This document shows positions 22,730-47,273 of a stretch of 64,000 nt of DNA, piece after piece. How positions within the stretch are numbered: the first letter of the stretch is position 1; each line of letters opens with the position of its first letter. The stretch is from the sequence record PP496438.1; one strand, given 5' to 3'. The notes below the pieces were generated by a model, which had not been told where the DNA came from, did not search any database, and saw only the letters and a program-made list of their open reading frames with translations. The position numbers and the translations under genes were made by a program.

Positions 22730-22778
22730 TGGATAGCTCGCGTATTACCGGAGTGAATGGAATTGGACGTTATCAGCC

Positions 22779-22786: not shown

Positions 22787-22789
22787 AGA

Positions 22790-23505
22790 CTATATACAGA
22801 GTATCTTATGGGGGTTAAAAAGGACCATCTTGCAATTATTTGGGTCATTAATTCCCTTTCATACCCTAAACCTCTATCTGTGAATACGGGGGTAGTTATC
22901 CCTAGATACATCCCTATTACCTGTGTCTATTGACCATGTAGACTCTATTCCCCTATCGGGGACTATAACCTCGAAAAAGGTTCCTAGCTTGCATGGGCTG
23001 GCCCACCCACCCCCGTGGCCCCACCCGACCGCCCGGTTAAGGCCATACCTAGGGATTCCTTTCTCCCAGAGGGACCCCCAGCCGCCCATCCTTCCCCTGC
23101 TCCTCCCTTTCCTTCATCATCTACACCCACCCAGCTATTGACTTACCATCTAGTGATCCTCCTTCCTCCAGCTTCTACATAGGCAGTTAGTTTCCCCATG
23201 CCTCTAAGTCCCTACGCTTCATCATGCACTTATGCTCTGTAGTACTGATTCCCCCACATGCCCGTGACTTATGCTCTGGTGTCAGTATTCCCAGCCTCCC
23301 AGGTGAAAAGGGTGTCCATGTGCCGTGTGGGTTGTCCGGGGAATAGCGCCCGTGGATAGGGCTTCCAGGCGTGCGATATGGGGAGTTTTTCGGGGATGGG
23401 TAAGTCAGTATGGCTGGGAATGGGGAATGAAGCGCCTGCGAGCTTGTAGGAGCCCGTGGTTATTGGCGGGATATGCAGGACTGGGACGGGGGTTTCCTGC
23501 GGAGG
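22790..23505. other. long non-coding region, candidate replication origin
   Basis: No credible ORF; AT-rich left part; abrupt switch from C-rich to G-rich near 23310; ACTTATGCTCTG direct repeat (23228, 23267); inverted ATTCCCAGCC/GGCTGGGAAT. Confidence 0.4.
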
Positions 23506-23507
23506 TG

Positions 23508-23541
23508 AAAAAGCCCGCACGGCTTGGGACCGATACGGGCT
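23508..23541 (-). terminator. intrinsic terminator
   Basis: On the minus strand: AGCCCG...CGGGCTTTTT downstream of the 23548 gene. Confidence 0.7.
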
Positions 23542-23547
23542 CTGGTA

Positions 23548-25588: not shown

Positions 25589-25635
25589 GGTGTGGCTTCC
25601 TATTGGACAGTGGGGCGGCAGTGTGCCGCACGTGC

Positions 25636-25665
25636 ATGATATCAGATGGGAACCATGGGTGTCAA
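25636..25665 (-). promoter_or_regulatory. sigma70-type promoter
   Basis: On the minus strand: TTGACA-18 nt-TATCAT with extended TG. Confidence 0.65.
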
Positions 25666-25684
25666 CACCCGACCGACGCAGGTG

Positions 25685-25718
25685 AAAAAGCCCACGCAGC
25701 GGCTAGGCAGGTGGGCTT
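25685..25718 (-). terminator. intrinsic terminator
   Basis: On the minus strand: AAGCCCAC...GTGGGCTTTTT. Confidence 0.7.
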
Positions 25719-25722
25719 GAGG

Positions 25723-26013
25723 TCAAACGAGCTTCAATACTGGCCTTGGTTTTTCACCTACGTCAACGGACGCATGTAGTTCCAGATCAAGTGCGAGCCG
25801 TATTAAGTCCGAGTAGGGCTCTCGTGAGTGTGCCCAAACGTCTGGCAGTGTCGTGCGGTAGACGTGGACAACCGTGTGCAGCTCTTCCTTGGCGTAAACA
25901 CCTGCCCGCATCAACTGAGTAACCCGTGCACGCACCTTGGGTGTGATCCACGTGATCAGATCCTCATACGTTCCGGTCCAGATCATCACCTGATGATTAA
26001 CGCGCTTCGCCAC
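25723..26013 (-). CDS. hypothetical protein
   Basis: 96-aa ORF with GAGG RBS. Confidence 0.6.
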   Translation of the reverse strand: MAKRVNHQVMIWTGTYEDLITWITPKVRARVTQLMRAGVYAKEELHTVVHVYRTTLPDVWAHSREPYSDLIRLALDLELHASVDVGEKPRPVLKLV

Positions 26014-31971: not shown

Positions 31972-32186
31972 GACTTATCTCCAGTCAGGGGTGTGACTCC
32001 CAGGTAATTGCCGATGCGCGGAATGAACAATGGGCAGGCAGTTACACAGACCCAAGCAACGGACATGGGGAACACTACCCCTTGCAACATCGACCAGCCA
32101 CATGCAAACAGGATGATCAGACTAAGTACTGCGTAGTACGCGGACCAGATGATCAACCACCAAGCCTTACGGGACACGTTCTTCAT
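31968..32186 (-). CDS. small membrane protein (72 aa)
   Basis: ATGA-coupled to the helicase stop; two hydrophobic segments. Confidence 0.6.
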   Translation of the reverse strand: MKNVSRKAWWLIIWSAYYAVLSLIILFACGWSMLQGVVFPMSVAWVCVTACPLFIPRIGNYLGVTPLTGDKS

Positions 32187-33790
32187 TTGTTCCACTCCTT
32201 GCGAGCCTTTAGCTGGGCTTCGGTAGGGGCCACCCGGAATCGTGTGTTCTGGGGCGACAAGTTCTTGAGCAGTGTGGTGGTCACACATTCGTGCGGCGTG
32301 ATATGCAGCAGCAGGTCACTGGCTCGGGTATACGACACGTATTGAACGTGGGGCAGCTGGCCGTCTTCACAGTCGAACCAGTCGTCGATCACCGCGACTC
32401 GTTCACTCTCCATCCCCTTCGCACCCCATGAGGTGTTAAGTTCCACACCTTTGCCGTGGTCATTGGCAATGATCTTGGTGATGAACGTCTTCACTTCGGC
32501 AGCGCTACCAAGGTCCCAGTTGGTGACGATGTACAACGCAGCGTCTGCGGCATCCTTGATCAGTGGTTCCTTTGCCTCCTTACGCAAATCATCCAACGCC
32601 TTAACGAAGTCAAGAGTGGACTTGCGACCACAACGCATGGCGACACCAATCACCTGCTCAAGCACTTTGGCTTTCTTGAAGGTAACCTCCAGTCCGCGAT
32701 CCATGTACTCCAGCGCGATGCGGATCAGATGCTTGTTGCGGGCGCTGACCACACGCTGCACGTCGAACTTGATCATGCTCTTGATGCGGTACGGGTCCTT
32801 CTTGGTGTGCGCCGTCAGCATCTTGACTTGCCCACCCTCGGCGAAGGCTTCAAGCGGCACATCGGGGAATCGACCCTTGACGAACTCGACGATCTTCGAT
32901 TTGGACCGGTACGTGGTGGTAGACGGCAATCTCTTAGCGTTGAACTCCTTGAACATGTCAGCCATGCCCGCGCTCAACCCACCTCGGAACGCATAGATGG
33001 CCTGCCATGGATCACCGACGAAGACGAACAACATGCCCGGCTTCAACCGGCGGAACAGGCGAAGCGTGTCGTGCTGCACAAGGTTGAAGTCTTGGAACTC
33101 ATCGACGAACAACACGTCCGGCAGGATCTTCGCCAGCGTGGCGTACTGCGTGCGGATAAAGCTGTTGGCCAGAACCATGCGGCTCATGTCGTTGAAGTCT
33201 ACCGACGACGTGGTCTCATCACTGGCTTCCAGCGCCTCACATATTTCAGGAAGCAGTGGCACCACCTTCTCATGGGGAATCAAGAAGCGGTACTTGCCGG
33301 TGATCAGTTCCTTGATCTGCTTGGGGTCGCTGTAGGGAATGCCCAATTCACGGATACGCTCTCCGTGCCAGCGGATGTCCTTGTTCACACGAGGCCCGTC
33401 TTGGGGGAACAGTGCGTCCACCACCTGGAACCACTTGTCGAACATGATCGGTACGGCCTTGGCACCCGTCAACGTCTTGAACAACTCCAGCCCGTAGCTG
33501 TGCATGGTGGAACTGGAGACCGCCCGATCCTTAATACGCCGATCGAACACCTTGGCGTTGTCCGTGTTGAACACGATGGCGCGCATGGTCAGCTTCGGGC
33601 ACTCTTTACGAATGCGGCGGATAGTCTCGATGATCAGGGTGGTCTTACCCGATCCGGCACCGGCGTCGATGCCCACTGCGTCTTGTGGCTTGCCGGTGTA
33701 CAAGTCTTTAGGCATCGACTTGGCTTTCTTCAAGATCTCGTTGAAGATGTCATTCTGTTGCTTGGACCAAACTCTTTCAGTAGTGGACAT
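32183..33790 (-). CDS. UvrD/Rep-like superfamily 1 helicase
   Basis: GAGSGKTT, VDEFQD, VGDPWQAIYAFRG, TYRS and KGMES motifs. Confidence 0.9.
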   Translation of the reverse strand: MSTTERVWSKQQNDIFNEILKKAKSMPKDLYTGKPQDAVGIDAGAGSGKTTLIIETIRRIRKECPKLTMRAIVFNTDNAKVFDRRIKDRAVSSSTMHSYGLELFKTLTGAKAVPIMFDKWFQVVDALFPQDGPRVNKDIRWHGERIRELGIPYSDPKQIKELITGKYRFLIPHEKVVPLLPEICEALEASDETTSSVDFNDMSRMVLANSFIRTQYATLAKILPDVLFVDEFQDFNLVQHDTLRLFRRLKPGMLFVFVGDPWQAIYAFRGGLSAGMADMFKEFNAKRLPSTTTYRSKSKIVEFVKGRFPDVPLEAFAEGGQVKMLTAHTKKDPYRIKSMIKFDVQRVVSARNKHLIRIALEYMDRGLEVTFKKAKVLEQVIGVAMRCGRKSTLDFVKALDDLRKEAKEPLIKDAADAALYIVTNWDLGSAAEVKTFITKIIANDHGKGVELNTSWGAKGMESERVAVIDDWFDCEDGQLPHVQYVSYTRASDLLLHITPHECVTTTLLKNLSPQNTRFRVAPTEAQLKARKEWNK

Positions 33791-33855: not shown

Positions 33856-33917
33856 AGCGTATAGCAATCGAATACGTGGAATTAGCCCTTAACGGCGTCC
33901 CCACTAGCGGAGAACAC

Positions 33918-35396
33918 ATGAAATCTGTAGCCGTTGACTACCAAAAGATAGCCAAGGAATGCCAGTGTACCGAGCTGCCTTCTAAGGTAAGAGTTACGCG
34001 TGCACGGGTCTATCCAAACTTGAGGACGTGCCTACTCTTCCTCAAGTACGATGCCAAAGGCGATCTGGTGCAAGCCGAGATCACTGCGCCGTACGACACT
34101 TCCACCGAGCCAAAGGTGCGTGTGCTCAAGCACCCGGACAAGAAGTCCGACTTCCTTTCATTATATAGAGCGCTGATCCGCCATCAGATCATACCCGAGT
34201 CTATTCCGAAGAAAGGTAACGGGATTGCACCGACGCTGGAGGTAATCGGCACACTGGTGAGCCTGCTGCCGGAACGGGATGTCGAAACCTTCCGAACCCT
34301 GACCCCGGCCATCCAGACTGGCAGCGTCATGTACGTCCCTCTGGTTACGTCCCGGCCAATGCCCATGGTGCAACACTGGATACCCGTTGACCAGCATTCA
34401 GAGCTGGGCATGATCGAGCTGGTCGATACGGATAGCAAGCCTTTCCTTAATCAGTGGGTCAACAGGTTGAGCAACACCGCCACCGGTTATGTGATCTACA
34501 CCCCGGAAGGCTCACACGGTCAGGAACTCGCCTGCTTCCGTGTGCCCAATGTGCAAGGAGAGGAACTGTGCGTGGTCAAGAAGGTGGACTTCACCCTTAC
34601 CGTTGCTCGCACCCTCAAGCCGGTACTGACCGTCTCCACCAAGAGTACGCGTGCCGTATCCCGCATTCCCCTACCCCACTATCTGATGCTGCGCAATCAC
34701 CACATCAAGGTGGGCACGGTTATTTCCCTGCGGCGTAACGACCGAGGTGGGTTGGTGTACCATGAGACGGTGGCAGAGGAAGGGATGACACCTCTGCCAC
34801 TGTGCCCACATTGCCATAGTGGATCTGTGCTGCGAAGTAGTAGCAATGACGTGTACTGCAATAACGATTCATGCCGAGGCCTAGCCATCGTGCGACTTCG
34901 CTACATCTTGAACAACAAGCTGGACGTCAAGTACCTGAGTCAGAACAAGGTGACGGCGTTGGTCAACGACAAGCAGGACCTGTTCAGCTTGCTCAAGACA
35001 CCGACTCACCTATTGCGGCACAGAGCGGGCTTCGGTGCACGTACGGTGGATGCGCTGGAAGAGAAGCTGAACACTATCGCCGGTCTTCCACTGCACACGC
35101 TGGCCGAGATGTCCTGCGCTTTCTACAACGTGGGTGTGCCCCCGCTGGATGAGATGGTGTTCAAGAAGATCTTTTCCGTGATGTCGCTTGACCACCTGAA
35201 AGCACTGCCCTCCACCGGTAAGATGTACAGCCAGTTGCTCGACATCGAAGGTATCCGCAACAACCGCGCAGTGGCTTTCCTCGCTGGTTGGCCTGCATTT
35301 CAACAGTGGATGATAGATCTTAACGCTGCCCTACAGTCTCGTAGCGCAATCTCCTCCACGGTAAATAACCCGAAACAAATTCGAGGTGTTAAATGA
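33918..35396 (+). CDS. degenerate NAD-ligase-like protein (OB, zinc finger, HhH; no catalytic KxDG)
   Basis: ACFRVP...VKKVDFTLTVARTLKPVL...VSRIPL...IKVGTVISLRR, CPHC...YCNNDSC and GFGARTVDAL follow the LigA C-terminal order; GGAG RBS before ATG 33918. Confidence 0.7.
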   Translation: MKSVAVDYQKIAKECQCTELPSKVRVTRARVYPNLRTCLLFLKYDAKGDLVQAEITAPYDTSTEPKVRVLKHPDKKSDFLSLYRALIRHQIIPESIPKKGNGIAPTLEVIGTLVSLLPERDVETFRTLTPAIQTGSVMYVPLVTSRPMPMVQHWIPVDQHSELGMIELVDTDSKPFLNQWVNRLSNTATGYVIYTPEGSHGQELACFRVPNVQGEELCVVKKVDFTLTVARTLKPVLTVSTKSTRAVSRIPLPHYLMLRNHHIKVGTVISLRRNDRGGLVYHETVAEEGMTPLPLCPHCHSGSVLRSSSNDVYCNNDSCRGLAIVRLRYILNNKLDVKYLSQNKVTALVNDKQDLFSLLKTPTHLLRHRAGFGARTVDALEEKLNTIAGLPLHTLAEMSCAFYNVGVPPLDEMVFKKIFSVMSLDHLKALPSTGKMYSQLLDIEGIRNNRAVAFLAGWPAFQQWMIDLNAALQSRSAISSTVNNPKQIRGVK

Positions 35397-36157
35397 ACAA
35401 TCAAAACAGAACTCGTATCGCTGTGCTTGTCGGCGGCGGTCTGGACTCACATGCGTACATGGTGTTGAAAGCCGACCAGCCTCAGACAGACTTCATTCAT
35501 GTGGACTACGGCCAGCGGGTTGCAGTAGCCGAGAGAAACGCCGTGTTGCAAATGGCTGAGAAGCTGGGCATTGCCCGCAGCCGGGTGTACACGCTGATCT
35601 GCAACAAGAAGAATCACATGCGCAAGGTCAATGACGGTGTGGGTGTGTTGTTTGGCACCGGCCCGGTCGAGATGGACAATGCGTTTGTTAAGGGGCGTAA
35701 CCTGTTCCTGATTCAGAAGGCCATCGAGCTGGGCTACGGTCACGTGCACCTGACGCTGACCCAAGAGCGTGGCCGGATGTTCCCCGATGCCGATCTGGCA
35801 TTCGTCCAGCTGGTGGACAACCTGATGCACCGCAGTTATGACGTGAGGGTGTCCGCACCCTACATCATGGAAGACAAACACCGGGTGATGTTCAAGGCGT
35901 ATCGGCACTGTCCCGAGTTCATCGATATGTCTTTCACGTGCTGGGTAGGTCCTTATGTGGAATGCGGAACGTGCCCGCACTGCTACAAGAAGGAAAAGAT
36001 TCGAGCCGAGATGATCGTTGAGAAGATTGAATACGATCTCAGCAAGGATGAACGTGAGGCGCAGTGGGAGCAAGTCAAGGCAGGCTACGGCGACGCGTTG
36101 AAGCCCGCTGAGACCATCAACATGAACATTCAGGTTGTTGACGGGGAAATGAAATGA
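35393..36157 (+). CDS. queC: QueC-like PP-loop ATPase (paralog 1)
   Basis: GGGLDS, DYGQR, KGRNL, FPDA and SFTCW...CGTCPHC zinc motif. Confidence 0.85.
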   Translation: MNNQNRTRIAVLVGGGLDSHAYMVLKADQPQTDFIHVDYGQRVAVAERNAVLQMAEKLGIARSRVYTLICNKKNHMRKVNDGVGVLFGTGPVEMDNAFVKGRNLFLIQKAIELGYGHVHLTLTQERGRMFPDADLAFVQLVDNLMHRSYDVRVSAPYIMEDKHRVMFKAYRHCPEFIDMSFTCWVGPYVECGTCPHCYKKEKIRAEMIVEKIEYDLSKDEREAQWEQVKAGYGDALKPAETINMNIQVVDGEMK

Positions 36158-36915
36158 ACAAGTTCTTAGGTTGGTTCAAGCGTCTGCTGGGTAAGGAGCA
36201 AAAGGCGGTAACGATGACAATGACCGACGCCAGTGGCAAGTTGGTCACCATTCATATACCTAAAGGTGCTGGGGTTGAGTACACCTTGTCGAAGTCGGGT
36301 GCCCACTTGAACGTCTCGGTCAAGGACGACATCTTCGTATTGAGCACGAACGGTGCTGGAGGCGGTGGGGGTGGCCGCGGTAGATCCAAACCTGGTGGCC
36401 CCGTCCATCCGCCCGTGCATCCGCGCCAAACCGTCCCAGTGGGTCCAGGCGCCCCGAACATGGGTTGCGCTGGGGACGCACCGAGTGGAGCAGGTGTAAC
36501 GTCGCCAGTGGGCGCTCAAGCTTCGTTCCCTATCGGTGCCCGAGCCACTGTTTCTGGTGGTGGCCGCGTTGGTGGTCTGGCGGGTGACGGACGGGAACAC
36601 AGAGAACTCGGAGGTGCACCCGGTCCCGGCGGAGATAGCTTCGTGCCCTCTCCAATCCGTAGTAGTGACCGAGCCTATCGCATCCGCGGTCTGTACTACG
36701 TCATTACGACTCGAAAGCTTACAGGTGAGGAGTACCCGACCCACGAACTTCTGCACTGGGGCCTTCGAGACATAGAACTCATGGGCAAGTTCTCAACGGT
36801 CCGTGAAGCTATCGACGAACTCAAGAGTAAGCTGGGTATCGTGTTAGACGATATTACGGACTATCAGGTTGACTCCATTCCCAAACGAATGTGCAAACCA
36901 CCGCACAAATCTTGA
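36154..36915 (+). CDS. Gly/Pro-rich hypothetical protein
   Basis: 253 aa, ATGA-coupled to QueC-1; GGGGGGRGRS run and a G/P-rich middle. Confidence 0.65.
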   Translation: MNKFLGWFKRLLGKEQKAVTMTMTDASGKLVTIHIPKGAGVEYTLSKSGAHLNVSVKDDIFVLSTNGAGGGGGGRGRSKPGGPVHPPVHPRQTVPVGPGAPNMGCAGDAPSGAGVTSPVGAQASFPIGARATVSGGGRVGGLAGDGREHRELGGAPGPGGDSFVPSPIRSSDRAYRIRGLYYVITTRKLTGEEYPTHELLHWGLRDIELMGKFSTVREAIDELKSKLGIVLDDITDYQVDSIPKRMCKPPHKS

Positions 36916-36918
36916 GCG

Positions 36919-36926
36919 GGTAAATG
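36919..36926 (+). promoter_or_regulatory. candidate phage promoter GGTAAATG
   Basis: Intergenic, 28 nt before QueC-2. Confidence 0.5.
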
Positions 36927-36953
36927 GCTCGCAACTAATCCGGAGACACTAGC

Positions 36954-37772
36954 ATGACCACTACACCCCCTAAGATTATCGTCGCATTCAGCGCTGGCAC
37001 AGATTCAACCACAGCGGCCTATTACTATCGCAAGCTCGGGTATCAGGTTACGCTGGCTGTCTTCGATGATGGCCCCTGCAACGATCCAAAGGATCCTCTG
37101 TACGATCCTAACAAGCCGGAAGATCTTACCAATTTCTCCGACGAGTTCTACGATTACGTACGAATCCATCAAGAACACACTGAGGGTCACCTGCAGTTCG
37201 ACTTTGTGGAGATCCGTTACCCACAGCTCCCGTTGTTGGAAGCCAACAAGACGGCTAAACCTGGTCGGGACAACGCGGCGGCAGCCGAAGCTGACGGCTT
37301 GGGGTTCTGGGTAGGCTTCAAAGGCCTGATGGCGATGATGCTGATGAGCCACGGCGCGGCCAACGGTTACGAGGCTGTAGTCTTCGGCCACATGCCGTAC
37401 AACAACCATTACGAAGATGAGCTGCCGCAGAACTTCGAGCTGCTGCGCCAGTACATGGTTACGGCCTATGGTAGCCGGGTGACTATTCCTCAGGTCTATC
37501 ACCCGTTCTACCGACCCAACTTTGATACCAAAGAAAAGGTTATCCAGCTGGCGTTGAACATCGGTGTGCCACTGGGAGATACTTATTCGTGCCGCCGAGG
37601 TGAAGCGGAAACCCGAGGCGTCCTCCTGCCACTTCTGCGCGGCGGTAAATCCAACTACGTGATGCCCACCTACCGCTGGAAGCATTGCGGAACGTGTGAG
37701 AACTGTGTAGAACGCAAGCGAGCTTTCGCCGCGCTGGGCATGAAAGACCCAGCCCCTTATATGGAACATTGA
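36954..37772 (+). CDS. QueC-like PP-loop ATPase (paralog 2)
   Basis: AFSAGTDS, TKEKVIQLALNIGVPLGDTYSC and CGTCENCVERKRAF. Confidence 0.85.
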   Translation: MTTTPPKIIVAFSAGTDSTTAAYYYRKLGYQVTLAVFDDGPCNDPKDPLYDPNKPEDLTNFSDEFYDYVRIHQEHTEGHLQFDFVEIRYPQLPLLEANKTAKPGRDNAAAAEADGLGFWVGFKGLMAMMLMSHGAANGYEAVVFGHMPYNNHYEDELPQNFELLRQYMVTAYGSRVTIPQVYHPFYRPNFDTKEKVIQLALNIGVPLGDTYSCRRGEAETRGVLLPLLRGGKSNYVMPTYRWKHCGTCENCVERKRAFAALGMKDPAPYMEH

Positions 37773-37773
37773 T

Positions 37774-38763
37774 ATGGCCCTTTCAATCTGGCCGCTGACC
37801 GAAGGTGAACTCGGTCAGGGCCTCGTCAACGAACTGAATCGTACCAGCAAGGCGCTGGTGAACCGGAGTATGTGGTCTTTGCCATTGCTCCGGCGTTTGT
37901 TTTATCGGCGCACCGAGATTGGTGTCCCGGAGCTACTCCACGTCTGTACCAGCATTCATCGGGGCAAGACTTACTTCTGCCTGTTGGTGAACTTCCGAGA
38001 CGTGGTGATGGGCAATCCCGACCAGTATGGCTGGGATCTGGCGGGCCGCTGGTTGTTCTACGACGTTGATCTGCTGGACACCCCGCCGTTCAAAGCGGTG
38101 AAGAAGTCCGTTGAGTCCCGTGCTACCAAGACCGAAGTGTCGTACGGTCAGGCTTTCCTCCCTTACGAGAAGAGCGATGAGGAATACGTCAAGTCCCTCA
38201 AGGGCAACTACAAGCCCCACATCTTCGGCGAGAAGTCCAAGCAGTATCGCATCTCATCGTACTTCGGACTGGCAGCGGTAGCCCCCTTCGCTCAAGCTCT
38301 GATGTGCTTCGGCATTCAGCGCGCCGAAAGGTTTATGGCCGAAGGGCAGAACGATGTCCTCCCCGAATTGTACGACCTGCCACTGCAACTGGCTGGTCTT
38401 GGTAACATCTCGAACACCCGCATCGGCTGTGTGACCATTGAAGTAGAAGGTACGATGGTAGGTGCTATCAGCATGTATGCTCAAGGTGCACTTGGTGATG
38501 CTGACATGCTGTATCTGCATGAAATCCTCATCGACCCGGACCCCAAGTGGAAGAGCTTGTCACTGGCTACTCTGCTGCACATTCATGCCGTCCTGTACTA
38601 TCGCCGATCCCTCCAGAAAGACGTAGTGTTCAATCTGGGCTACAACTTCGCCGACGGATATCAAGGTTACAAGGATGTCTTCCGGCCCAACGCCAATAGC
38701 TTCAACGTGTACACCGAGATGGACACCGAGCCCGGCGTACCACTGTCCTGTTTCAAGGGGTAA
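37774..38763 (+). CDS. GNAT/Fem-like (Acetyltransf_6-type) acyl/aminoacyl transferase
   Basis: LPYEKSDEEYVKSL...VEGTMVGAI...SLATLL...FNLG...GYKDVF pattern. Confidence 0.6.
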   Translation: MALSIWPLTEGELGQGLVNELNRTSKALVNRSMWSLPLLRRLFYRRTEIGVPELLHVCTSIHRGKTYFCLLVNFRDVVMGNPDQYGWDLAGRWLFYDVDLLDTPPFKAVKKSVESRATKTEVSYGQAFLPYEKSDEEYVKSLKGNYKPHIFGEKSKQYRISSYFGLAAVAPFAQALMCFGIQRAERFMAEGQNDVLPELYDLPLQLAGLGNISNTRIGCVTIEVEGTMVGAISMYAQGALGDADMLYLHEILIDPDPKWKSLSLATLLHIHAVLYYRRSLQKDVVFNLGYNFADGYQGYKDVFRPNANSFNVYTEMDTEPGVPLSCFKG

Positions 38764-38766
38764 GAC

Positions 38767-39768
38767 ATGTACACTCCGTATTCCCAAAACAGCCTTATGC
38801 AGTCGATCCCTCTGGATGACCAAGGTACATTCGCCCATCCACCGTACACGATGGAAGGAGAGTTCACCGACGTGTGGACGAATCCCAGCCTGTACGGGTT
38901 TGTTAGCTTGTTGAACGGTCAGAGCAATAGCCGGGCATATCGAGACTGGATGACCACCCACAATCTTCCAGCCCTGTTCCTCGGTCCGCACCATGAAGAC
39001 AACTTCTGGTTTGAATTCAGCACTGGTCTCGATTCCAACTGCACGCTGGATTACAACGAGATCAACGTCCAAGGCAACCTGCAGGACTTCCTTGGGAGAT
39101 TGACGTCATCTCGCCGTCGCTCCGTGCTCAAGGCAAAGGAAACGGATACAATGATCCACAAGGCAGGCTCGGTAGCCAACTTCAACCTGTATCATCCGGT
39201 AGAGGGTAGGCTGTATAGTCTGACCGTGATTCACGAACGCCGGGTGATGAAAGATATTTCCGAGTTTATCGAATCGAAACTCTGGAGTATGAAGCATACG
39301 CCTACTGACCTCACGTACGGTGCATTCACCACTCTGATGGACTACATCCGGTTGAAGCAGCGAGATGACACGCCGCTGGGCCACCGGTTGCGCAACGTAC
39401 AGCTCTTGGTTATCCGAGATGAACGCTCCGGGTTTATCGTGTCGGTACACCTGGTGGCGATCACCACGTTGAAAGATGAGTCCATGAACCCCATCAAGAC
39501 GTACATGCACTCCTTCGCACGCATCACTGTTCTCCCTGCACGCATCGCCTTACTTGCGTTGATCAAGGCGGTTCAAGAGTTAAACGTCACCAGTCAGTAT
39601 GCGTCCCGTGCACTGGCGAAGATCGACTATCTTGATGTGAGCAACGTGGTGCTGTCCGAGCGAGAGCAGTACAAGTCGGACTTCTTCACCGGCAAATGCC
39701 AAGTGCGTGCGTGGGCATCCCCGGCGCTGCTGGAACGGCAGTTACCTTTCGTCACGCCGATCCCGTAA
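38767..39768 (+). CDS. GNAT/Fem-like transferase
   Basis: QDFLGRLTSSRRRSVLKA and C-terminal YLDV...QYKSDF. Confidence 0.55.
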   Translation: MYTPYSQNSLMQSIPLDDQGTFAHPPYTMEGEFTDVWTNPSLYGFVSLLNGQSNSRAYRDWMTTHNLPALFLGPHHEDNFWFEFSTGLDSNCTLDYNEINVQGNLQDFLGRLTSSRRRSVLKAKETDTMIHKAGSVANFNLYHPVEGRLYSLTVIHERRVMKDISEFIESKLWSMKHTPTDLTYGAFTTLMDYIRLKQRDDTPLGHRLRNVQLLVIRDERSGFIVSVHLVAITTLKDESMNPIKTYMHSFARITVLPARIALLALIKAVQELNVTSQYASRALAKIDYLDVSNVVLSEREQYKSDFFTGKCQVRAWASPALLERQLPFVTPIP

Positions 39769-39771
39769 CTC

Positions 39772-39784
39772 TGTAAATGATGGG
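39772..39784 (+). promoter_or_regulatory. candidate phage promoter TGTAAATGATGGG
   Basis: Intergenic; 12-nt identity to the 8824-8835 site. Confidence 0.55.
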
Positions 39785-39822
39785 AACAGCCCCACCATCA
39801 CTTCATCTCTAGGGTAGTTCCC

Positions 39823-40875
39823 ATGCAAGACTTCGATAAGATAATGATCGATAGTAGTTTGACATCCAATCTGGTGTACGCAGGGTTGGGTAACTTGATC
39901 ACGCCCCGCGCACTTGACCTGCTGATCGAACATCAGGCTGCACTGGAAAACGTATACGCCAATCTGGAAACGGCCTATCAGATTACCCCACCCTTCCCCT
40001 GTGAAGCTGCATTCAATTCCCCTGACAAAGATCCTGTGCTGGTCGCCGACTATCTGAATGCTACTCCCGCCATCCGTTGCGGAGAGCTGTCTGGATTCGA
40101 GGCAAAGCCCGGCAGTTACTACCATGCGCCCGCCGCTGGTATCTCCCCGGAACATCGCATTGACGTACGTGGTATGTCTTTGCGTGAGTTCGACCACTAT
40201 CTGGTTGAGCGTAAGGAAGTATCCCGTATCACTACCAATCTGGTGGCCGACAAGTTCCGCTGTGAGACGCATGTGTACAAAGTGGATGAAGATCATATCC
40301 TGATCCATGACGCCGAACGAGTTGGGATCAGCCAGACGGACTTCCGCCGCATGTGGGCGCAGACCCGCCGCCGGGAAATCGCTGAAAACTATCTGCAGTA
40401 CATGCCCATCGAAGATTCCGCCAAGGATGATCAGGTGGTGCGACTGATCAACGAAGACGTAGCACGGGTGTTCGCCCAGAACGTCGACTACGACCGCATG
40501 ATTCCGCCCGAGCTGATCTTCGATGGTCAGGGCAAGCCGGTGCTGACCGTGCTGAAAGATTGCAACGCCAAGGTATTGGGCATTGGTGTGTACGTCATCT
40601 ACAAGTCAGCTGACCCAGAGCATGACAGCGAACTGCACTGGCGTGGCGCTTTCTACGATCACGAAGATCCTCGCGTAGCATCCATGGGCATTGAACACGC
40701 TCTGGTTGCCAGCGCACTGCACACAGCGTACGCCTGCAACGCGGTCCTCTATCTGACCAAGGCACCTAAGTCCGTGTGCGACGCATGGAAGACGGAAGTG
40801 CACCAAGGTTACGGTCTGGTCCGTAATGCGATGCCGGAACTGTCTGACACCCCTTACATTCTGGCTATCCAGTAA
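39823..40875 (+). CDS. GNAT-fold protein, ATE/Bpt-like aminoacyl transferase candidate
   Basis: C-terminal KVLGIGVY...GAFYD...SMGIEHAL resembles the FYDP...SLG motif of Arg/Leu-tRNA protein transferases. Confidence 0.45.
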   Translation: MQDFDKIMIDSSLTSNLVYAGLGNLITPRALDLLIEHQAALENVYANLETAYQITPPFPCEAAFNSPDKDPVLVADYLNATPAIRCGELSGFEAKPGSYYHAPAAGISPEHRIDVRGMSLREFDHYLVERKEVSRITTNLVADKFRCETHVYKVDEDHILIHDAERVGISQTDFRRMWAQTRRREIAENYLQYMPIEDSAKDDQVVRLINEDVARVFAQNVDYDRMIPPELIFDGQGKPVLTVLKDCNAKVLGIGVYVIYKSADPEHDSELHWRGAFYDHEDPRVASMGIEHALVASALHTAYACNAVLYLTKAPKSVCDAWKTEVHQGYGLVRNAMPELSDTPYILAIQ

Positions 40876-40908
40876 ATAGCCGGTAACTCCATCCATTGAG
40901 GTACTTCC

Positions 40909-42993
40909 ATGAAATCCGTGAACCCCATCTTCAAACACGTTCCCCAGTTCGACTGGCCTGTCATTCCCCGTGCGCAGTGGGAAGAGATCATCAAGGGAAA
41001 AGAGCATGTGATGTTCGACTCCTTCTCGCAGCTCGCTCAGGTGCTGGCTATCCCGGTGAGCAGTTACCAGTTCTACTTCGAAGATGGGTCCACGTTGTTC
41101 GCCGGTCCCGAAGCAACCTTCACCGCCGCCCCCTATCCGTTGTATCAGGATCTGGAATTCGTCCTGACCCCGGATGAGACGTTGGTGCCGGGTCTTGCAC
41201 TGGATACCAAACCGTGGGGCCTGTACACCGACGAATGGGTGGACAACTACGAAGGTGCGGACAAGGAAGACATCGGCAACAAGACCGGGTTCGAATTCAT
41301 TCCGCTGTCGGACGCTTTGAAACTGGTGGTCCTCAACACGGAGACCATGCAGCTCCAGTACACTGCAATCGAGAGCTTCACGTACGACGGCGTGACTTAC
41401 GTATACCTGCTGGCCGATGGCGTGTGCTGGGTACTGGCGGGCAAGTCCGGTGGTCTGGTTGCCAGCGAGCATGACAAAGGCGCGGCGTTCATCATGGTGT
41501 CCCATCCCGAGTTCGCCGGGTGCAGCGTAGACAACATGTACCCAAGTGAGTTCGGTGAAGCGGAAGCGACGTTCTACGTTCAAGACGAGGAACACAATTA
41601 CCTGGACGCGGCTAACCGCATCTTCGAGGAAGCCAAGGACGTAGGCGCTGGCACGTTCCTGACCATTGAGACCGGTGATGGATTGCCGACCGCGCTGGCG
41701 TACAACCTGCGGTACAGTGATGTGGCCCACGTTAATCTGCCGATGCACAACATCCACCAGTTCACTTCTCTTCACGTACGACTGGGTGAGACGCCTAACT
41801 TCTCCGAGGCCCCGGAAGCGTGCCGCATGAAAGAGGTGATGGAGTATCTGGCGGACCCTGAGTCCCCGGTAGATCATTACTGGTCGGCCATCATGGTACT
41901 GGAGAAGAACTTCCCCGGTTTCGCCGACGCCCTGAAAGACTCCAGTGTCCCGACCCGTGACATCGTGCACTCCAAACAGGCGTTCAGCTTGGAGATCGAT
42001 CGCCAGTTCGGCAAGGAAGTGGCAAGCAAGATCGGGCTGAACACTGGCGTATTCGCTCAAGTGAAAGACCGTGATGAATGGCTGGTACGCAAACACGAGT
42101 TCCCTACCGATAAGGTGGCCGTCAAGTACAACACCAAACACTTCATCGGCATCTTCGACAAGGACGAGGTATCGAAGTCCATCAACATGTGGCTGGCTGG
42201 TCAACCCGGAGAGTCGCTGATGATCGAAGAGTACTTCGGTGAGGGCAATCAGGAATTCAACCTGTGCTACGTGATCAACGAAGATTTCGTGCAGCCGACG
42301 CTGTTCCTGTGCGAAGTCAACAAGATCCTCAGCAATGACACCGGCGGCAAAGGTGGCAACACGCTGGCCTGCCATGATGCTCGTATTAACAAGTACCCTG
42401 AGTTCTTCGAGCCGGTCAATAATGCGCTTGCTAACCTGCATGAGCACGTGGAAGGTGTGAAGGGCTGGGTTGACCTGAGCTTCATGGTTCGCGACGGTAT
42501 CCCATACTTCACAGAGTGGTGCATTCGCATCGGCTGCTCCAACAACGCCACCATCGTGCGCCAGATGGAGACCCCGCTCGACGTCCTGTTGACTAACGTG
42601 GTCAACAAGGTGCATACCGAGCTGTCTTGGAAACACTCCATGTCTGTCAGCGTGGACATCTACAGCATGCCGCTATCCGCAGGCAACGACGCCAACATGC
42701 AGTTCACCGACTCGCTGACCACTCCGGTAGAGATGGTGTCCCCGCTCAATCTGGAACTGGCGGCGGAGAGTTTCTTCGACCCGATTGATTCGGCCTGGAA
42801 CGCGGTGTACGACGGCTACATCGTCGAGGCGTATAATCGCTATGGCACCGTCTCGGGGTACTCCACCAACTGGAACTTCGCCTGCAATGCGGCGTATAAT
42901 CACTTGAAAGATCAGTCGGTGTTGTACGGAGCGTACCGCGAAGCGCCTGCCCACCATGACCCACTGACTCTGTTCCCTTTCCTCAAGGCGTAA
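40909..42993 (+). CDS. PurD (GAR synthetase)-like ATP-grasp ligase with ~270-aa N-terminal extension
   Basis: SKQAFSLEIDRQFGKE, VAVK, MIEEYF, NDTGGKGGN, GWVDLSFM and FTEWCIRIG follow the PurD motif order. Confidence 0.75.
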   Translation: MKSVNPIFKHVPQFDWPVIPRAQWEEIIKGKEHVMFDSFSQLAQVLAIPVSSYQFYFEDGSTLFAGPEATFTAAPYPLYQDLEFVLTPDETLVPGLALDTKPWGLYTDEWVDNYEGADKEDIGNKTGFEFIPLSDALKLVVLNTETMQLQYTAIESFTYDGVTYVYLLADGVCWVLAGKSGGLVASEHDKGAAFIMVSHPEFAGCSVDNMYPSEFGEAEATFYVQDEEHNYLDAANRIFEEAKDVGAGTFLTIETGDGLPTALAYNLRYSDVAHVNLPMHNIHQFTSLHVRLGETPNFSEAPEACRMKEVMEYLADPESPVDHYWSAIMVLEKNFPGFADALKDSSVPTRDIVHSKQAFSLEIDRQFGKEVASKIGLNTGVFAQVKDRDEWLVRKHEFPTDKVAVKYNTKHFIGIFDKDEVSKSINMWLAGQPGESLMIEEYFGEGNQEFNLCYVINEDFVQPTLFLCEVNKILSNDTGGKGGNTLACHDARINKYPEFFEPVNNALANLHEHVEGVKGWVDLSFMVRDGIPYFTEWCIRIGCSNNATIVRQMETPLDVLLTNVVNKVHTELSWKHSMSVSVDIYSMPLSAGNDANMQFTDSLTTPVEMVSPLNLELAAESFFDPIDSAWNAVYDGYIVEAYNRYGTVSGYSTNWNFACNAAYNHLKDQSVLYGAYREAPAHHDPLTLFPFLKA

Positions 42994-42996
42994 TCC

Positions 42997-44157
42997 ATGA
43001 GCACTCCATTCCAAGAGTTCACCCTAGAGGGGTGGATTCAACATATGAATCAGGATCAAATCTGGAAGCGGTACGCCAACGATCATCCTAACAGGGTTGA
43101 GTTCAGCCCTGTTTGGCGTGACGAGATGTATCGGTTGATGGTACAGTTCAAAGAGCTGCTGCCGATGTCGTTCTCCAATCCGGTGTACGGCTTCACCGAA
43201 GGCTATCTGGAAGGGTTCGGACTCCAGCCTTTCTACGGCGATGATCCTTTCAATCCGATGGTTCAGCCTCTTAGCCATCCTCTGGTTCACGTGGGCTTCC
43301 CACTCACACTGGACGAGATCGTAGCGAGCGTGCGGGACTGGCAGTCCCTGAGCGATCACCTGGGGCGTCCGCAACTGGTCGATACATTCGAGCCGGTTTC
43401 ACTGCTAGCGCGCAACCTGTACGAGCCTAACGCGCTGCTGGCCGTACGGAACAAGGAAGAGATCGTGATGAACGGGGGCACGCCCGCGAACTACTTCCTC
43501 TGGCTGAATAGCCCGGTCACCGAACTCAAAGACGACTTCGACGTTTATCTGGCCAGCCTGACCAAGAAGCGCCGCTACAAAGTGAAGCAGGCGTTGGCGA
43601 CGGTAGGCACCGAAGAGAATCCCCGGATCAGCGTCAGCACCGGGTCTCGTTTCGGCGAAGGGCTGTTGTCCGATCAGGTGGACAGCATCCTTGCTACGTT
43701 CGAAGATCCAGTGGACATCGAGTGCATGCTTCTTCAGTTGCTATTCGGGGTTGCAACCTGCAATACCCATCCGCATCTTGTCGATCTGGTGTGTGCAGAC
43801 CAGCAGTTGGGGATCTTCATCAAGCGTAACGGCCACACGATGAACTTCCTCTACAACCGCGACCCGGACAACCGCGCTGATTCAGGCATAAACCTGCTTA
43901 CCCAGTACGTGCGCCATCTGCACATGAACCGACCGGAAGGTGTTATGTACGTGGACCCGACATGCCGATATCGGCCTGACGAGGACAGTATGAACACCTA
44001 CAAGCGGGTGATCACCAACGAGAACCGGTATCACCCAATGCCGTTCGTCTCGGCTGACCCTGCGCACATCGAAGGTGTGCTTACCCCGGCGTTCATTGCA
44101 GGCCATTGGCAGATGTCGGCGTCCAACGGACCGGCCAACCCCGAGATGATGGAGTAA
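42997..44157 (+). CDS. GNAT/Fem-like transferase
   Basis: FDVYLASLTKKRRYKVKQA, GINLL and TYKRV. Confidence 0.65.
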   Translation: MSTPFQEFTLEGWIQHMNQDQIWKRYANDHPNRVEFSPVWRDEMYRLMVQFKELLPMSFSNPVYGFTEGYLEGFGLQPFYGDDPFNPMVQPLSHPLVHVGFPLTLDEIVASVRDWQSLSDHLGRPQLVDTFEPVSLLARNLYEPNALLAVRNKEEIVMNGGTPANYFLWLNSPVTELKDDFDVYLASLTKKRRYKVKQALATVGTEENPRISVSTGSRFGEGLLSDQVDSILATFEDPVDIECMLLQLLFGVATCNTHPHLVDLVCADQQLGIFIKRNGHTMNFLYNRDPDNRADSGINLLTQYVRHLHMNRPEGVMYVDPTCRYRPDEDSMNTYKRVITNENRYHPMPFVSADPAHIEGVLTPAFIAGHWQMSASNGPANPEMME

Positions 44158-44159
44158 CC

Positions 44160-45107
44160 ATGGCAAAGTCCAAAATGAGACGGTTGGCGATCAACCACAT
44201 CTATGACTTCTACCCGTTGTATCAGGTGATGTACGGGCGTGGCATGGAGACCAAAGCGTTCGAGGTATCCAAGTTCGCCAAGATGGTTATGGACTTCGAA
44301 GCCTCGACCAGTACTCGCCGGAAGTGGGACGTGCTGGAGCCCTTCAGCGGTATCAGTGAACACGAACACTTCTTCGCTGCGACCGGCCTGAACATCGAGC
44401 ACTACACCGGCATGGACATTGTGGTTCCAGATGGGGCCACGAACGTCATTCAAGGGGACATCATCACCGACACCCTTCCGTTTCACGTCAACGCAGTGTT
44501 CGCCTTCTACTACAGCTTGCAGAATGTACGGGACGCGGCGACCGGCATGCACACGCGGGCCAAGCTGGTGGAGTTCTTCGACAACATCATTGGTCATCTG
44601 CAAGTAAATGCGAACAAGAGCCGTATGCCCGCAGTGTTCGCGTTCCACCTTGACCAGCCTGAAGATCCTAATTACTATCTGACGTCCCGTGCCGACGTTG
44701 GAGGTGAACAGTCATGGACTGCACCCGCGTGTGGTCTGCTCGGGCAGTGGGTCAAGTGCAAGCCGACTGACACTCTGGAAGTCAAGTGCAATCTGGATAC
44801 CTGGTACAACCGCGTGCAGTGCACAGCGTATGATCAGGCAGAGGACATTCAGATTCTGGTAAATGGGAAAGTAACCGCTGTCGTAGACATCGAGCAGCCG
44901 TTCACCCATCGGGTCTGGACCGAGCATGAGGTCATCGATATCCTGCGGGGTCTGGACTACAATCTGCACTTCCACATGTACAACGGCACCCTCTCCAATT
45001 ACGACTTCTTGATGACCCGGCTGGACGACAAGCCCGTTCCCGGCGATGAAGAGTCTAATACTAATCAGATGACAACTGATATGTTGGTTGTCGTTAATCC
45101 GAGGTAA
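44160..45107 (+). CDS. class I SAM-dependent methyltransferase
   Basis: VLEPFSG (motif I variant), GMDI, IQGDI, NAVFAFYYSL; GGAG RBS before ATG 44160. Confidence 0.6.
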   Translation: MAKSKMRRLAINHIYDFYPLYQVMYGRGMETKAFEVSKFAKMVMDFEASTSTRRKWDVLEPFSGISEHEHFFAATGLNIEHYTGMDIVVPDGATNVIQGDIITDTLPFHVNAVFAFYYSLQNVRDAATGMHTRAKLVEFFDNIIGHLQVNANKSRMPAVFAFHLDQPEDPNYYLTSRADVGGEQSWTAPACGLLGQWVKCKPTDTLEVKCNLDTWYNRVQCTAYDQAEDIQILVNGKVTAVVDIEQPFTHRVWTEHEVIDILRGLDYNLHFHMYNGTLSNYDFLMTRLDDKPVPGDEESNTNQMTTDMLVVVNPR

Positions 45108-45109
45108 GC

Positions 45110-46027
45110 ATGGCTAAGCCCAAGGTTCCAACCAAGACGATCCCCACGTTGTACCAAGACTGGGGATTGTACAGCGCCATCTGCGAACTGCCGCAGGAGA
45201 CGATGCTGATGATGTCGCGCTTCGTGGCAGACCGAACCATTGAGCACGCTGAGCGTATCGATCAGGTAATGGTCGAGATCATGGAACCCTTCAGCGGCCC
45301 AATCCCGTATTACGAGCCAGACATCCGCAGCTTCCTGACCCGCGCTAAGCTTGATCTGTACACGTACGATCACGTCGAATACCTGGATCACGGCAAACTG
45401 TCGGAAGACAACGGCATCATCATCGGTGACATTACCACCATCGATCTGAAGCAGAAGTACGACGTCATCTACGGCAGTTACGGCAGCTTGGCCTGCCTGC
45501 TGCTGGATCAGACGCACAACAAAGCGTACGAAAAGTCGCACGCGGCGCTGGTCAACATCCGCAACCACCTGAAACCCAACGGCATCTTCATCCTGAACGC
45601 CAACGGGTCCAGTGAGAGCCTACTGAACAACCTGCTGAACTCCGATGAGCCGGATCAGGAGATTCGCGTTCGTCCGGGATCGCAGCTTGGCAAGAAGTTC
45701 GGCATCAAGCCGGACAGCAACGCGCTGCTTCGCTTCACCTATCACGTGGAGTACGACCGACGCACCACCTGCACCATGTGCCACTACAGCGATATGGTGC
45801 TGTCTGTAAATGGGGTTGACATCCAGCGCTGGGAGGTGGAATCCCCGACGTATCTTGCTCCGCTGGACGAACCCGAACTAATTCGAATGGCAGGTATGGC
45901 TGGTTTCAATCTGGACAACACTGAGTTCTACGGATTGGACACCACCGGTTATCCTGCCTTCTTCAAAATGGATACGGTCTGCGACGGGTCATGGTCACCC
46001 GCCGAGTTCGTAGTCTTTCGCACCTAA
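45110..46027 (+). CDS. class I SAM-dependent methyltransferase
   Basis: MEPFSG, IGDI, YDVIYGSYGSL and HLKPNGIFIL. Confidence 0.8.
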   Translation: MAKPKVPTKTIPTLYQDWGLYSAICELPQETMLMMSRFVADRTIEHAERIDQVMVEIMEPFSGPIPYYEPDIRSFLTRAKLDLYTYDHVEYLDHGKLSEDNGIIIGDITTIDLKQKYDVIYGSYGSLACLLLDQTHNKAYEKSHAALVNIRNHLKPNGIFILNANGSSESLLNNLLNSDEPDQEIRVRPGSQLGKKFGIKPDSNALLRFTYHVEYDRRTTCTMCHYSDMVLSVNGVDIQRWEVESPTYLAPLDEPELIRMAGMAGFNLDNTEFYGLDTTGYPAFFKMDTVCDGSWSPAEFVVFRT

Positions 46028-46037
46028 CGAGGTTCCT

Positions 46038-47273
46038 ATGAGCGTTATCATCCCCACCGTAGCGATGGAGAGTGGTCAGCCAGACATGATCATTCAAGGC
46101 TGTTCCACTGGTCGCGTCTCTATGGCCGAGCCTAACGAGAGCGCCAAACCCAAGTCTTCCAAGAAGCTGTACGAACGTGAAGACCTGATGGCGTACGACA
46201 GCGAGTCGGAGCACTGGCAGAAGCAGTTGGCCCGCCGCTACGCTCACCATGGTGAGATGGTCGGTGTGTTGAACAACGTCGAGGTGGTGCCGGAAGCCAC
46301 CTACCAGAACTTCGACATGAAGATCACTCCGTACACCGCGCAGTTGATGGATCAGAACGACCCCAACTGCCCGATTCGTCTGCAGTACATGCCGACCAAC
46401 AAAGAGCTGGAGTCGATTCAGCGTGAAGAGACCATGCACAACGAGCTGGGCGAGGAAGAGGACACCGTCCCCGGTACCTCGGTCGTGCACCGCTACCCGC
46501 GCCGCGTCTTGTTCCTGACCACCACCCAGTGCGCTAGCTTCTGCCGTTACTGCACCCGTGCACGCATCGTCTCTCACGGCGGTGAAGCGGCTATCACCAA
46601 GAAGCACCTGGACGCCAGCATCGACTACATCGCCTCGAACAAGGACATAGAAGACGTGTTGCTGTCCGGCGGTGACCCGTTCATCCTGCCAGACAACAAG
46701 CTCGACGAGATCCTCGGTCGTATCCGCGCCGAAGCACCTCACGTTCGCTTCCTGCGTATTGGTAGCCGACTGCCGGTACAGATGCCGACTCGTATCACTC
46801 CAGAGCTGTGCGAGATTCTGGAACGCCACAACGTCAACATGGTCAACATCCATGTGAACCACCCGAAAGAGGTCACCCCACTGCTGGCCTCCCGGATGAA
46901 GATGTTGCGCAAAGCTGGCGTGATGATCGGTAATCAGGCGGTCCTCCTGAAAGGCGTGAACGACTCCATCGAGGTGATGACCGAGCTGTGCTTGCGCATG
47001 GTCGAGATGGGTGTGCGTCCGTACTACGTCTACTCCAACGATCCGGTTGCGCAGGCCGCACACTTCACCGTCTCGCTCCGTGATATGCTGGACATCAACG
47101 AAGGCATGCGTGGCTTCCTGTCCGGCCCGGCAATGCCCACCTTCGTGGTGGACGGCGTGGGTGGCTTGGGCAAGATGCCCGTGCAGAAAGAGTATGTGAC
47201 AGTACTGGGGAGTGGTAAGATCTGGGCCACCAACTTCGAAGGAATGACCACTCGCATGCCCCATCTGGAGTAA
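46038..47273 (+). CDS. kamA: lysine 2,3-aminomutase (KamA/EpmB family radical SAM)
   Basis: HRYPRRVL, CASFCRYC (CxxxCxxC), SGGDPF, HVNHPKE, NQAVLLKGVND, PYY and GGLGKMP (PLP lysine). Confidence 0.93.
   Translation: MSVIIPTVAMESGQPDMIIQGCSTGRVSMAEPNESAKPKSSKKLYEREDLMAYDSESEHWQKQLARRYAHHGEMVGVLNNVEVVPEATYQNFDMKITPYTAQLMDQNDPNCPIRLQYMPTNKELESIQREETMHNELGEEEDTVPGTSVVHRYPRRVLFLTTTQCASFCRYCTRARIVSHGGEAAITKKHLDASIDYIASNKDIEDVLLSGGDPFILPDNKLDEILGRIRAEAPHVRFLRIGSRLPVQMPTRITPELCEILERHNVNMVNIHVNHPKEVTPLLASRMKMLRKAGVMIGNQAVLLKGVNDSIEVMTELCLRMVEMGVRPYYVYSNDPVAQAAHFTVSLRDMLDINEGMRGFLSGPAMPTFVVDGVGGLGKMPVQKEYVTVLGSGKIWATNFEGMTTRMPHLE

Follow-up and report, generated by a model that had tools for sequence, protein, structure and literature searches.

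The locus studied here raises the question of what a DNA ligase with no recognisable active site is doing at the head of a phage gene cluster that begins with two QueC-like genes. The window, by which we mean the whole stretch of 64,000 nucleotides analysed, corresponds to bases 124001–188000 of PP496438.1 (100% identity), the genome of the 202 kb jumbo-type Pseudomonas phage vB_PpuM-SKa-4, whose host is P. putida. The gene, SKa4_00188, encodes 492 amino acids and is annotated in that record as 'hypothetical protein'. A first-pass annotation made from the letters alone had called it a catalytically dead paralog of the NAD-dependent ligase LigA, and had proposed that it may serve as a scaffold that scans DNA and brings modification enzymes to it. 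Three questions follow: (i) whether the protein descends from LigA, and which parts of LigA it keeps; (ii) whether it can still act as a ligase; and (iii) whether it belongs to the enzyme cluster or to the replication and repair genes around it.

Judged by its sequence, the SKa4_00188 protein descends from an NAD-dependent DNA ligase of the bacterial, zinc-finger-bearing type and has become a pseudo-enzyme, and its family is a new and very rare family of pseudo-ligases. With a probability of roughly 0.4, we read it as a DNA-binding accessory without catalytic activity that serves a module for 7-deazaguanine (hyper)modification of DNA. What the first-pass annotation observed is thus confirmed, and its interpretation is borne out in part.

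Relationship to LigA and loss of the catalytic residues

A profile of the four lineages of the family (the P. putida phages, the Vibrio phages GR11A and GR7B, and a metagenome contig, L005) aligned end-to-end with a profile of 18 LigA proteins in hhalign (E-values of 3e-33 and 9e-42), residues 1–492 of SKa4_00188 being paired with residues 79–613 of Escherichia coli LigA. Against the PDB, the family profile matched the LigA structures 1v9p, 1dgs and 2owo (E-values of 4e-16 to 1e-11) over the OB fold, the zinc finger and the helix-hairpin-helix (HhH) region. For SKa4_00188 itself, TIGR00575 was matched with an E-value of 1e-6 and a phmmer search of the PDB returned a weak match to Deinococcus LigA, while whole-protein Pfam and PHROG scans gave no match; PF03120, the OB fold, is on record for the L005 homolog. 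Word-indexed homolog searches found nothing beyond the SKa4_00188 protein and true LigAs. An exhaustive HMMER search of 1.84e9 representatives recovered SKa4_00188 itself, two relatives of 437–440 amino acids and 14 true LigAs, the matches to the latter being confined to residues ~210–470; significant similarity to LigA covers the C-terminal 60% of the protein.

An AlphaFold2 (AF2) model, built on a mixed alignment that included LigA rows, reached pLDDT values of 80–93 for residues 215–478, 55–76 for residues 30–145 and less than 50 for residues 144–212; a prediction from the single sequence reached 35. In structural comparison with VIA, residues 28–472 of the model superimposed on residues 109–580 of E. 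coli LigA bound to DNA (2owo) with a Z-score of 19.8. The model fits the closed, DNA-bound form best (2owo and 4glx, Z ~20), compared with Z ~12 for open forms. Among the viral structures of BFVD, the top match was an independently modelled protein of 440 amino acids, for which that library has no name and which equals the GR7B and L005 homologs in length; true viral LigAs came next.

The LigA-like OB fold, C4 zinc finger and HhH region claimed for this protein from its letters are therefore borne out by profiles, by structural match and by four invariant cysteines, although the domain list needs amending: a degenerate N-terminal domain is present as well, and domains Ia and BRCT are missing (Table 1). 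Residue 1 pairs with residue 79 of E. coli LigA, which leaves no domain Ia, and the protein stops ~14 residues past the HhH domain, so that LigA beyond residue 613 has no counterpart. The four zinc-finger cysteines are invariant in all four lineages and align to C408, C411, C426 and C432 of E. coli LigA. Within the HhH domain, the glycine of the GFG motif of HhH2 is kept in all lineages, that of HhH3 is lost, and that of HhH4 is found only in the Vibrio phages. With a pI of 9.3 overall, 9.5 in the HhH domain and a higher value still in the OB fold, the protein is basic. Residues 1–215 taken alone gave a hhalign probability of only 2% against LigA (E-value of 0.02), in a local register that matches the global alignment; ESM features of this domain pointed to PF01653 in 96 of the 100 nearest clusters, with a score of 0.74 that we treat as a lead only. 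Since the match is non-significant alone and the ESM score is only a lead, we consider these residues a probable, rather than a proven, remnant of the nucleotidyltransferase (NTase) domain.

To assess catalysis, the catalytic and DNA-contact residues of E. coli LigA, a list that follows mutational studies of the Shuman laboratory, were mapped through the profile alignment. All 18 true LigAs, that of the phage among them, keep K115, D117, G118, R136, E173, R200, D285, G286 and K314 unchanged. Listed for SKa-4, GR11A, GR7B and L005 in turn, their equivalents are N34, G, G and N for K115 (motif I); R, L, S and G for D117; T, G, G and G for G118; P, A, A and A for R136; N or a gap for E173 (motif III); R, E, K and S for R200; T, K, K and E for D285 (motif IV); G, G, G and N for G286; and P, K, K and K for K314 (motif V), which is thus replaced in SKa-4 only. 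Five of these residues (K115, D117, R136, E173 and D285) are replaced in all four lineages. The missing KxDG motif had already been remarked upon in the first-pass annotation, and the position it should occupy can now be named: the register of the VIA superposition, in which model residue 37 lies on chain residue 118, independently sets N34 opposite K115. A K43-Y-D-A string that might be taken for a surviving motif I was rejected, as the profile and structure alignments both give N34, nine residues upstream of K43, and the string reads VYDN, VYEA and TFKK elsewhere in the family. One residue, D60, which pairs with D138 in the TRGDG loop, is the same in all family members.

Because domains Ia and BRCT are absent, the adenylation residues are replaced and HhH glycines are lost, we conclude that SKa4_00188 does not encode a ligase; the protein is predicted to be unable to self-adenylate or to seal nicks, and may still wrap or bind duplex or nicked DNA as LigA does.

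The gene is nevertheless maintained: although its catalytic residues are lost, the family has been retained in four lineages at ~25% identity with an invariant zinc finger. Among the orthologs of five P. putida phages (no more than 0.6 synonymous substitutions per site), the ratio of non-synonymous to synonymous substitution rates (dN/dS) is 0.04–0.07 overall; between SKa-4 and Peetri, 151 synonymous and 49 non-synonymous differences give a value of 0.074. By domain, the ratio is 0.062 for the N-terminal domain, 0.008 for the OB fold, which is the most constrained, and ~0.1 for the HhH domain, and the reading frame is intact in nine P. putida phages. SKa4_00188 is under strong purifying selection, its dead N-terminal domain included, and values of this size exclude a decaying gene.

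SKa-4 also encodes a genuine ligase, SKa4_00145, and no phage with the dead copy lacks such a LigA. The intact ligase that the first-pass annotation placed at 1–834 does keep every catalytic residue, but it is encoded by the minus strand, the window covers no more than its first 278 residues, and it is not intact in its zinc finger, having L, S, T and G at the four cysteine positions; it is the mirror image of the dead copy. An ortholog with 37% identity is present in both Vibrio phages that carry the dead copy, and more distant jumbo phages that lack the dead copy have an ortholog too. SKa4_00188 and SKa4_00145 resemble each other weakly and in the HhH region only (BLASTP E-value of 0.003). 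The dead copy is not a recent duplicate of the phage's own ligase, as the term paralog might imply: because the zinc finger of the dead copy is missing from the resident LigA, which occurs also in relatives that have no such copy, we regard the latter as an addition of separate, zinc-finger-bearing origin. Two candidates for a detached domain Ia or a partner were rejected, each with a hhalign probability below 1%: the small open reading frame (ORF) that precedes the homologs in the Vibrio phages and L005, and SKa4_00048, which has no relation to LigA. The latter (PP496438.1 40963–41424, plus strand, 153 amino acids) adjoins DHFR and is named 'DNA ligase' in the record; its sole match is to the 67-position PHROG profile phrog_13916, at its C-terminus.

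Gene setting, enzyme cluster and deazaguanine genes

The ORF that had been called at this locus is real, its ribosome-binding site, ATG, TGA and GenBank annotation being in agreement. The ATG at 33918 is favoured over a listed GTG at 33876, upstream, because of the GGAGA sequence that precedes it, and the TGA stop codon occupies positions 35394–35396. The gene also heads the enzyme cluster as described, opening a long plus-strand block and overlapping the first QueC-like gene in an ATGA sequence. SKa4_00188 and the two QueC-like PP-loop ATPase genes are predicted to be co-transcribed, and the first two are translationally coupled in the P. putida phages.

Table 1. Features of the SKa-4 locus and related genes (window positions unless a record or contig is named)
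Feature	Position	Strand	Basis and remarks
SKa4_00188, LigA-derived pseudo-ligase gene, 492 aa	33918..35396	+	ORF and annotation, profile alignment, dN/dS
GGAGA ribosome-binding site, 4 nt 5' of ATG 33918	33909..33913	+	sequence read
Residues 1-215, probable degenerate adenylation (NTase)-like domain, without domain Ia	33918..34562	+	colinear with E. coli LigA 79-316 (full-length hhalign)
Residues 216-290, OB fold	34563..34787	+	PDB profile matches, E 4e-16; pLDDT ~90; pI 10.1
Residues 291-322, C4 zinc finger	34788..34883	+	C296, C299, C314, C319
Residues 323-478, HhH domain, partly degenerate	34884..35351	+	profile, VIA, pLDDT 80-93
ATGA stop/start overlap, SKa4_00188/QueC-like 1	35393..35396	+	sequence read
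QueC-like PP-loop ATPase 1	35393..36157	+	PF06508, E 5.6e-19; GGGLDS loop, CGTCPHC zinc motif; orthologs in L005 and L018
QueC-like PP-loop ATPase 2	36954..37772	+	PF06508, E 5.5e-12; SAGTDS loop, CGTCENC zinc motif; 45% orthologs in L005 and L018
h329, h333, h350, ATP-grasp, h386, h315, h305, KamA-family radical-SAM aminomutase	37774..47273	+	mosaic between lineages
UvrD/Rep-like SF1 helicase, divergent from SKa4_00188	32183..33790	-	adjoins the ligase-like gene in 4/4 lineages
SKa4_00145, genuine NAD-dependent DNA ligase, N-terminal 278 codons	1..834	-	motif I SDKLDG; annotation, residue map
SKa4_00018, 400 aa, C-terminal QueD/PTPS-like domain	PP496438.1 17747-18949	+	PF01242, E 2.8e-8; annotated 'hypothetical'
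SKa4_00105, TGT/DpdA-like, 456 aa	PP496438.1 81638-83008	-	PF01702; annotated 'hypothetical'
QueE-like radical-SAM protein	PP496438.1 193833-194804	+	phrog_2076, E 1e-41
FolE	PP496438.1 196770-197492	+	PF01227, E 1.7e-37
GR11A homolog	L002 7812-9125		annotated 'ligA, DNA ligase'
GR7B homolog	L003 8461-9783		annotated 'ligA, DNA ligase'

Both QueC-like proteins have variant PP-loops and keep the CGxCxxC zinc motif of QueC. They begin an enzyme block of twelve genes on the plus strand (35393–47273), several of which encode unrecognised proteins of 250–390 amino acids. A 694-aa protein of this block has a PurD-like ATP-grasp region, and the last gene encodes a KamA-family aminomutase (E-value of 1e-95). 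Resemblances of h305 to class I S-adenosylmethionine (SAM) methyltransferases and of h350 to GNAT proteins are leads only, and PDB profile searches with four unknown proteins of the cluster gave no match. The block looks like a pathway that joins an amino-acid-derived group to a deazaguanine, and the extra amino-acid-handling enzymes suggest further tailoring of the base.

The remaining deazaguanine genes are scattered in the genome, outside the window. The TGT/DpdA-like protein SKa4_00105 matched PF01702 with an E-value of 4.6e-8 and 32.9 bits (cutoff 26.3), over the last 60 profile positions only. Single-sequence phmmer searches with Saguaro DpdA, E. coli Tgt and two QueD proteins missed both the TGT-like and the QueD-like gene, although Pfam found them. 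By these profile matches, SKa-4 appears to carry a complete gene set for placing 7-deazaguanine into DNA, with two QueC-like genes and a TGT/DpdA-like member recognised by its C-terminal match; the set has so far not been annotated as such. A set of FolE, QueD, QueE and QueC together with a DpdA transglycosylase has been linked to 7-deazaguanines in phage DNA (PMC6884629, PMC10516641). Because they make up this known set, the TGT/DpdA-like, QueD-like, QueE-like and FolE genes speak more strongly for DNA as the target than does the dead ligase, which the first-pass annotation had taken as the main hint.

On the other side of SKa4_00188, the divergent UvrD-like helicase has its nearest phage homologs beyond the clade, at ~25% identity, in Queuovirinae (NP1, PaMx25, JG012). 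The best outside matches of the first QueC-like protein are in these same deazaguanine-modified phages, which could reflect a shared origin or coincidence. Elsewhere in the window, three stretches of 400–800 bp between minus-strand blocks (22730–23547, 25589–25996 and 10723–11152) are without annotated genes.

Distribution and competing explanations

In the phage collection, the family is confined to nine P. putida phages (91–100% identity) and the Vibrio phages GR11A and GR7B (25–28%); the fourth lineage is the 66 kb metagenome contig L005. It is very rare, with only three family clusters among the 1.84e9 representatives searched. Pattern scans of IMG/VR and JGI metagenomes with the family alignment added no members, nor did an IMG/VR scan with the ATP-grasp protein. 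In all four carrier lineages, the gene is divergent from the upstream UvrD-like helicase and stands ahead of two QueC-like genes; in the Vibrio and L005 loci, DHFR and a small ORF separate it from the helicase. Only these genes (helicase, ligase-like gene and the two QueC-like genes) are common to all four, while the other enzymes vary: L005 has h329, h333 and h315 in common with SKa-4, and the Vibrio phages have the ATP-grasp protein, h386 and KamA. The ATP-grasp and ligase-like genes occur in exactly the same 11 phage records. These carriers form one clade (major capsid proteins 54% identical), and phiRSL1, PaBG, Lu11 and other next relatives have neither gene. Around 49 unrelated QueC loci (683 kb), no LigA or ligase-like neighbour was found. 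All members of the family known to date stand at the head of a QueC-pair cluster.

A metagenome scan with an alignment of the second QueC-like protein identified a fifth lineage of the cluster, L018 (IMG/VR contig 3300045988_171246, 209 kb, locus 8304–16345), which contains both QueC-like genes (45% identity for the second), three h329-like paralogs, ATP-grasp and KamA; a second such scan returned generic QueC loci only. A weak OB match at the end of L018, considered as a ligase candidate, proved to be a gp32-like single-stranded DNA-binding protein with an acidic tail, from ~20479.

How the protein could serve the module may be sketched as follows. A DpdA-like transglycosylase would insert a deazaguanine, which would then be elaborated in place on the DNA, and the pseudo-ligase could keep the QueC-like enzymes, perhaps together with those of later tailoring steps, bound to that DNA; it would be helpful, not indispensable, to the cluster. 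We consider unlikely a more specific form of this proposal, in which the ligase-derived clamp is the DNA-docking subunit of an on-DNA tailoring pathway that yields an as yet unseen, amino-acid-bearing deazaguanine in phage DNA. Here, the DpdA-like enzyme would first insert a precursor such as 7-carboxy-7-deazaguanine; the clamp would place the two QueC-like PP-loop enzymes on the duplex, where the carboxyl group of the base would be activated in situ; and an amino acid made by KamA would be attached, followed by elaboration by the ATP-grasp, GNAT-like and methyltransferase-like enzymes.

Several observations weigh against an accessory role in modification. The N-terminal domain by itself is not significantly LigA-like, and its AF2 model has low confidence and leans on the LigA rows of the alignment. 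LigA DNA-contact positions are changed (R333 to V, T334 to A), and the glycine of HhH3 is lost. QueC normally works on the free base, not on DNA. The gene also has replication and repair genes around it (UvrD helicase, RNase H, topoisomerase II), a setting that a role in replication would fit equally well. Since all carriers belong to one clade, co-occurrence with the cluster amounts to roughly a single evolutionary event; and in L018 no ligase-like gene was detected from 8 kb upstream to 10 kb downstream, so that the cluster can exist without the protein nearby, and the protein looks like an accessory to it rather than an essential part. Co-occurrence of the gene with the cluster in relatives, which the first-pass annotation had named as a check, holds for the QueC-like pair in all four lineages, and the gene is absent from the 49 unrelated loci, but the result is limited by the single clade and by L018.

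The replication genes also furnish the alternative that we think somewhat unlikely: an accessory of replication or repair apart from modification, that is, a non-catalytic sensor of nicks or duplex that works with the UvrD-like helicase, RNase H, the genuine LigA or topoisomerase II. Such a protein might label or shield nicks or Okazaki junctions, or lend its zinc-finger/HhH clamp to the real ligase, which lacks the Cys4 finger. Divergent pairing with the helicase is conserved across the four lineages, RNase H and topoisomerase II flank the region, split heterodimeric phage LigAs exist (PDB 9hu3, 9i5i), and the cluster of L018 has no ligase-like gene nearby. However, SKa4_00188 is on the strand opposite the helicase and in one operon with the QueC-like genes, coupled to the first of them; viral LigAs without a zinc finger are generally known to be active alone; and in the wider jumbo-phage clade that same real LigA occurs without the dead copy. 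Rarity and restriction to one clade, as in many anti-defence genes, together with DNA-binding domains kept while catalysis is lost, would also suit a counter-defence decoy or shield, a ligase-shaped protein that covers nicks or ends of phage DNA, or soaks up a host factor whose target is LigA or DNA that is nicked or modified, so that modified, transiently abasic or nicked DNA is spared by host nucleases or glycosylases. One report indicates that hosts turn glycosylases on modified phage DNA (10.1101/2025.10.29.685425). We nevertheless hold this to be quite improbable, as the gene sits in a mid-genome metabolic operon rather than an early-gene region and shows very strong purifying selection instead of arms-race diversification.

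LigA domain Ia binds the NMN (nicotinamide mononucleotide) moiety of NAD+, and its absence bears on the proposal, to us very improbable, that the protein is still an enzyme whose remodelled N-terminal domain passes a nucleotide, or some other group, on to DNA or a deazaguanine intermediate through other residues. The N-terminal domain is as constrained as the rest (dN/dS 0.06), D60 does not vary among its members, and the candidates would be, for example, K43 of the P. putida phages or the motif V lysine that the Vibrio and L005 homologs keep. Yet none of the catalytic candidates is conserved in all four lineages (K43 is V, V or T elsewhere, and the motif V lysine is P in SKa-4), motifs I, III and IV are all lost, and LigA needs domain Ia for the reaction with NAD+. 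That the gene is merely the functionless, decaying remnant of a captured ligase, as the loss of all catalytic motifs and the lack of a whole-protein Pfam or PHROG match might suggest, is hardly credible and effectively refuted by its intact frame in nine phages, its dN/dS of 0.04–0.07 and its retention in four lineages with the zinc finger invariant.

Should SKa4_00188 encode the DNA-binding accessory of the deazaguanine module that we favour, docking tailoring enzymes on DNA, it would show how enzymes of the free base, such as QueC, are redirected to DNA. It would also mark the cluster as a likely source of a new hypermodified base, with relevance for the escape of phages from restriction and for tools based on modified DNA. 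Pseudo-enzymes that keep only the substrate-gripping parts of their ancestor are a recurring route to specificity subunits. A literature search returned no report of a ligase-derived pseudo-enzyme tied to base modification, and neither this gene nor any ligase or aminomutase is mentioned in the CEPEST phage paper and in the 2023 deazaguanine paper.

Comparison with known systems

E. coli LigA on nicked DNA (2owo) shares with the SKa4_00188 protein a colinear arrangement of NTase-like domain, OB fold, C4 zinc finger and HhH domain, whereas domain Ia, BRCT, the adenylation residues and two of the four HhH hairpin glycines have no counterpart in the phage protein. The phage's own LigA, SKa4_00145, belongs to the same superfamily and genome and differs in the opposite sense, having the catalytic residues and the Ia and BRCT regions but not the zinc cysteines. 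The split heterodimeric LigA of the T5-like phage PR1 (9hu3, 9i5i), which matches the fold of the model (Foldseek E-value of 8e-7; VIA Z of 8.9 over model residues 30–287), likewise has phage LigA modules on separate polypeptides. However, the titles of the PR1 entries say DNA ligase, whereas SKa-4 has a dead NTase-like module and a separate gene for a complete ligase.

The proteins annotated as 'ligA DNA ligase' in the Vibrio phages vB_VcorM_GR11A (QJT71093.1) and GR7B (QJT70918.1) are true members of the family, at 25–28% identity. As in SKa-4, their genes stand ahead of two QueC genes, an ATP-grasp protein (686/697 amino acids) and KamA; they differ in encoding proteins of 437 and 440 amino acids, and in being preceded by an overlapping ORF of 147–151 amino acids that is absent in SKa-4. 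Since the motif I lysine and other catalytic residues are missing, the name is unjustified and likely a misannotation, and it should not spread further.

DpdB of the bacterial Dpd system, an ATPase, has no relation to SKa4_00188 in sequence or fold. The likeness would be one of role: a deazaguanine enzyme that needs a partner other than a transglycosylase in order to work on DNA. As bDpdA acts in complex with DpdB (PMC10516641), a comparable part for the pseudo-ligase is possible by analogy.

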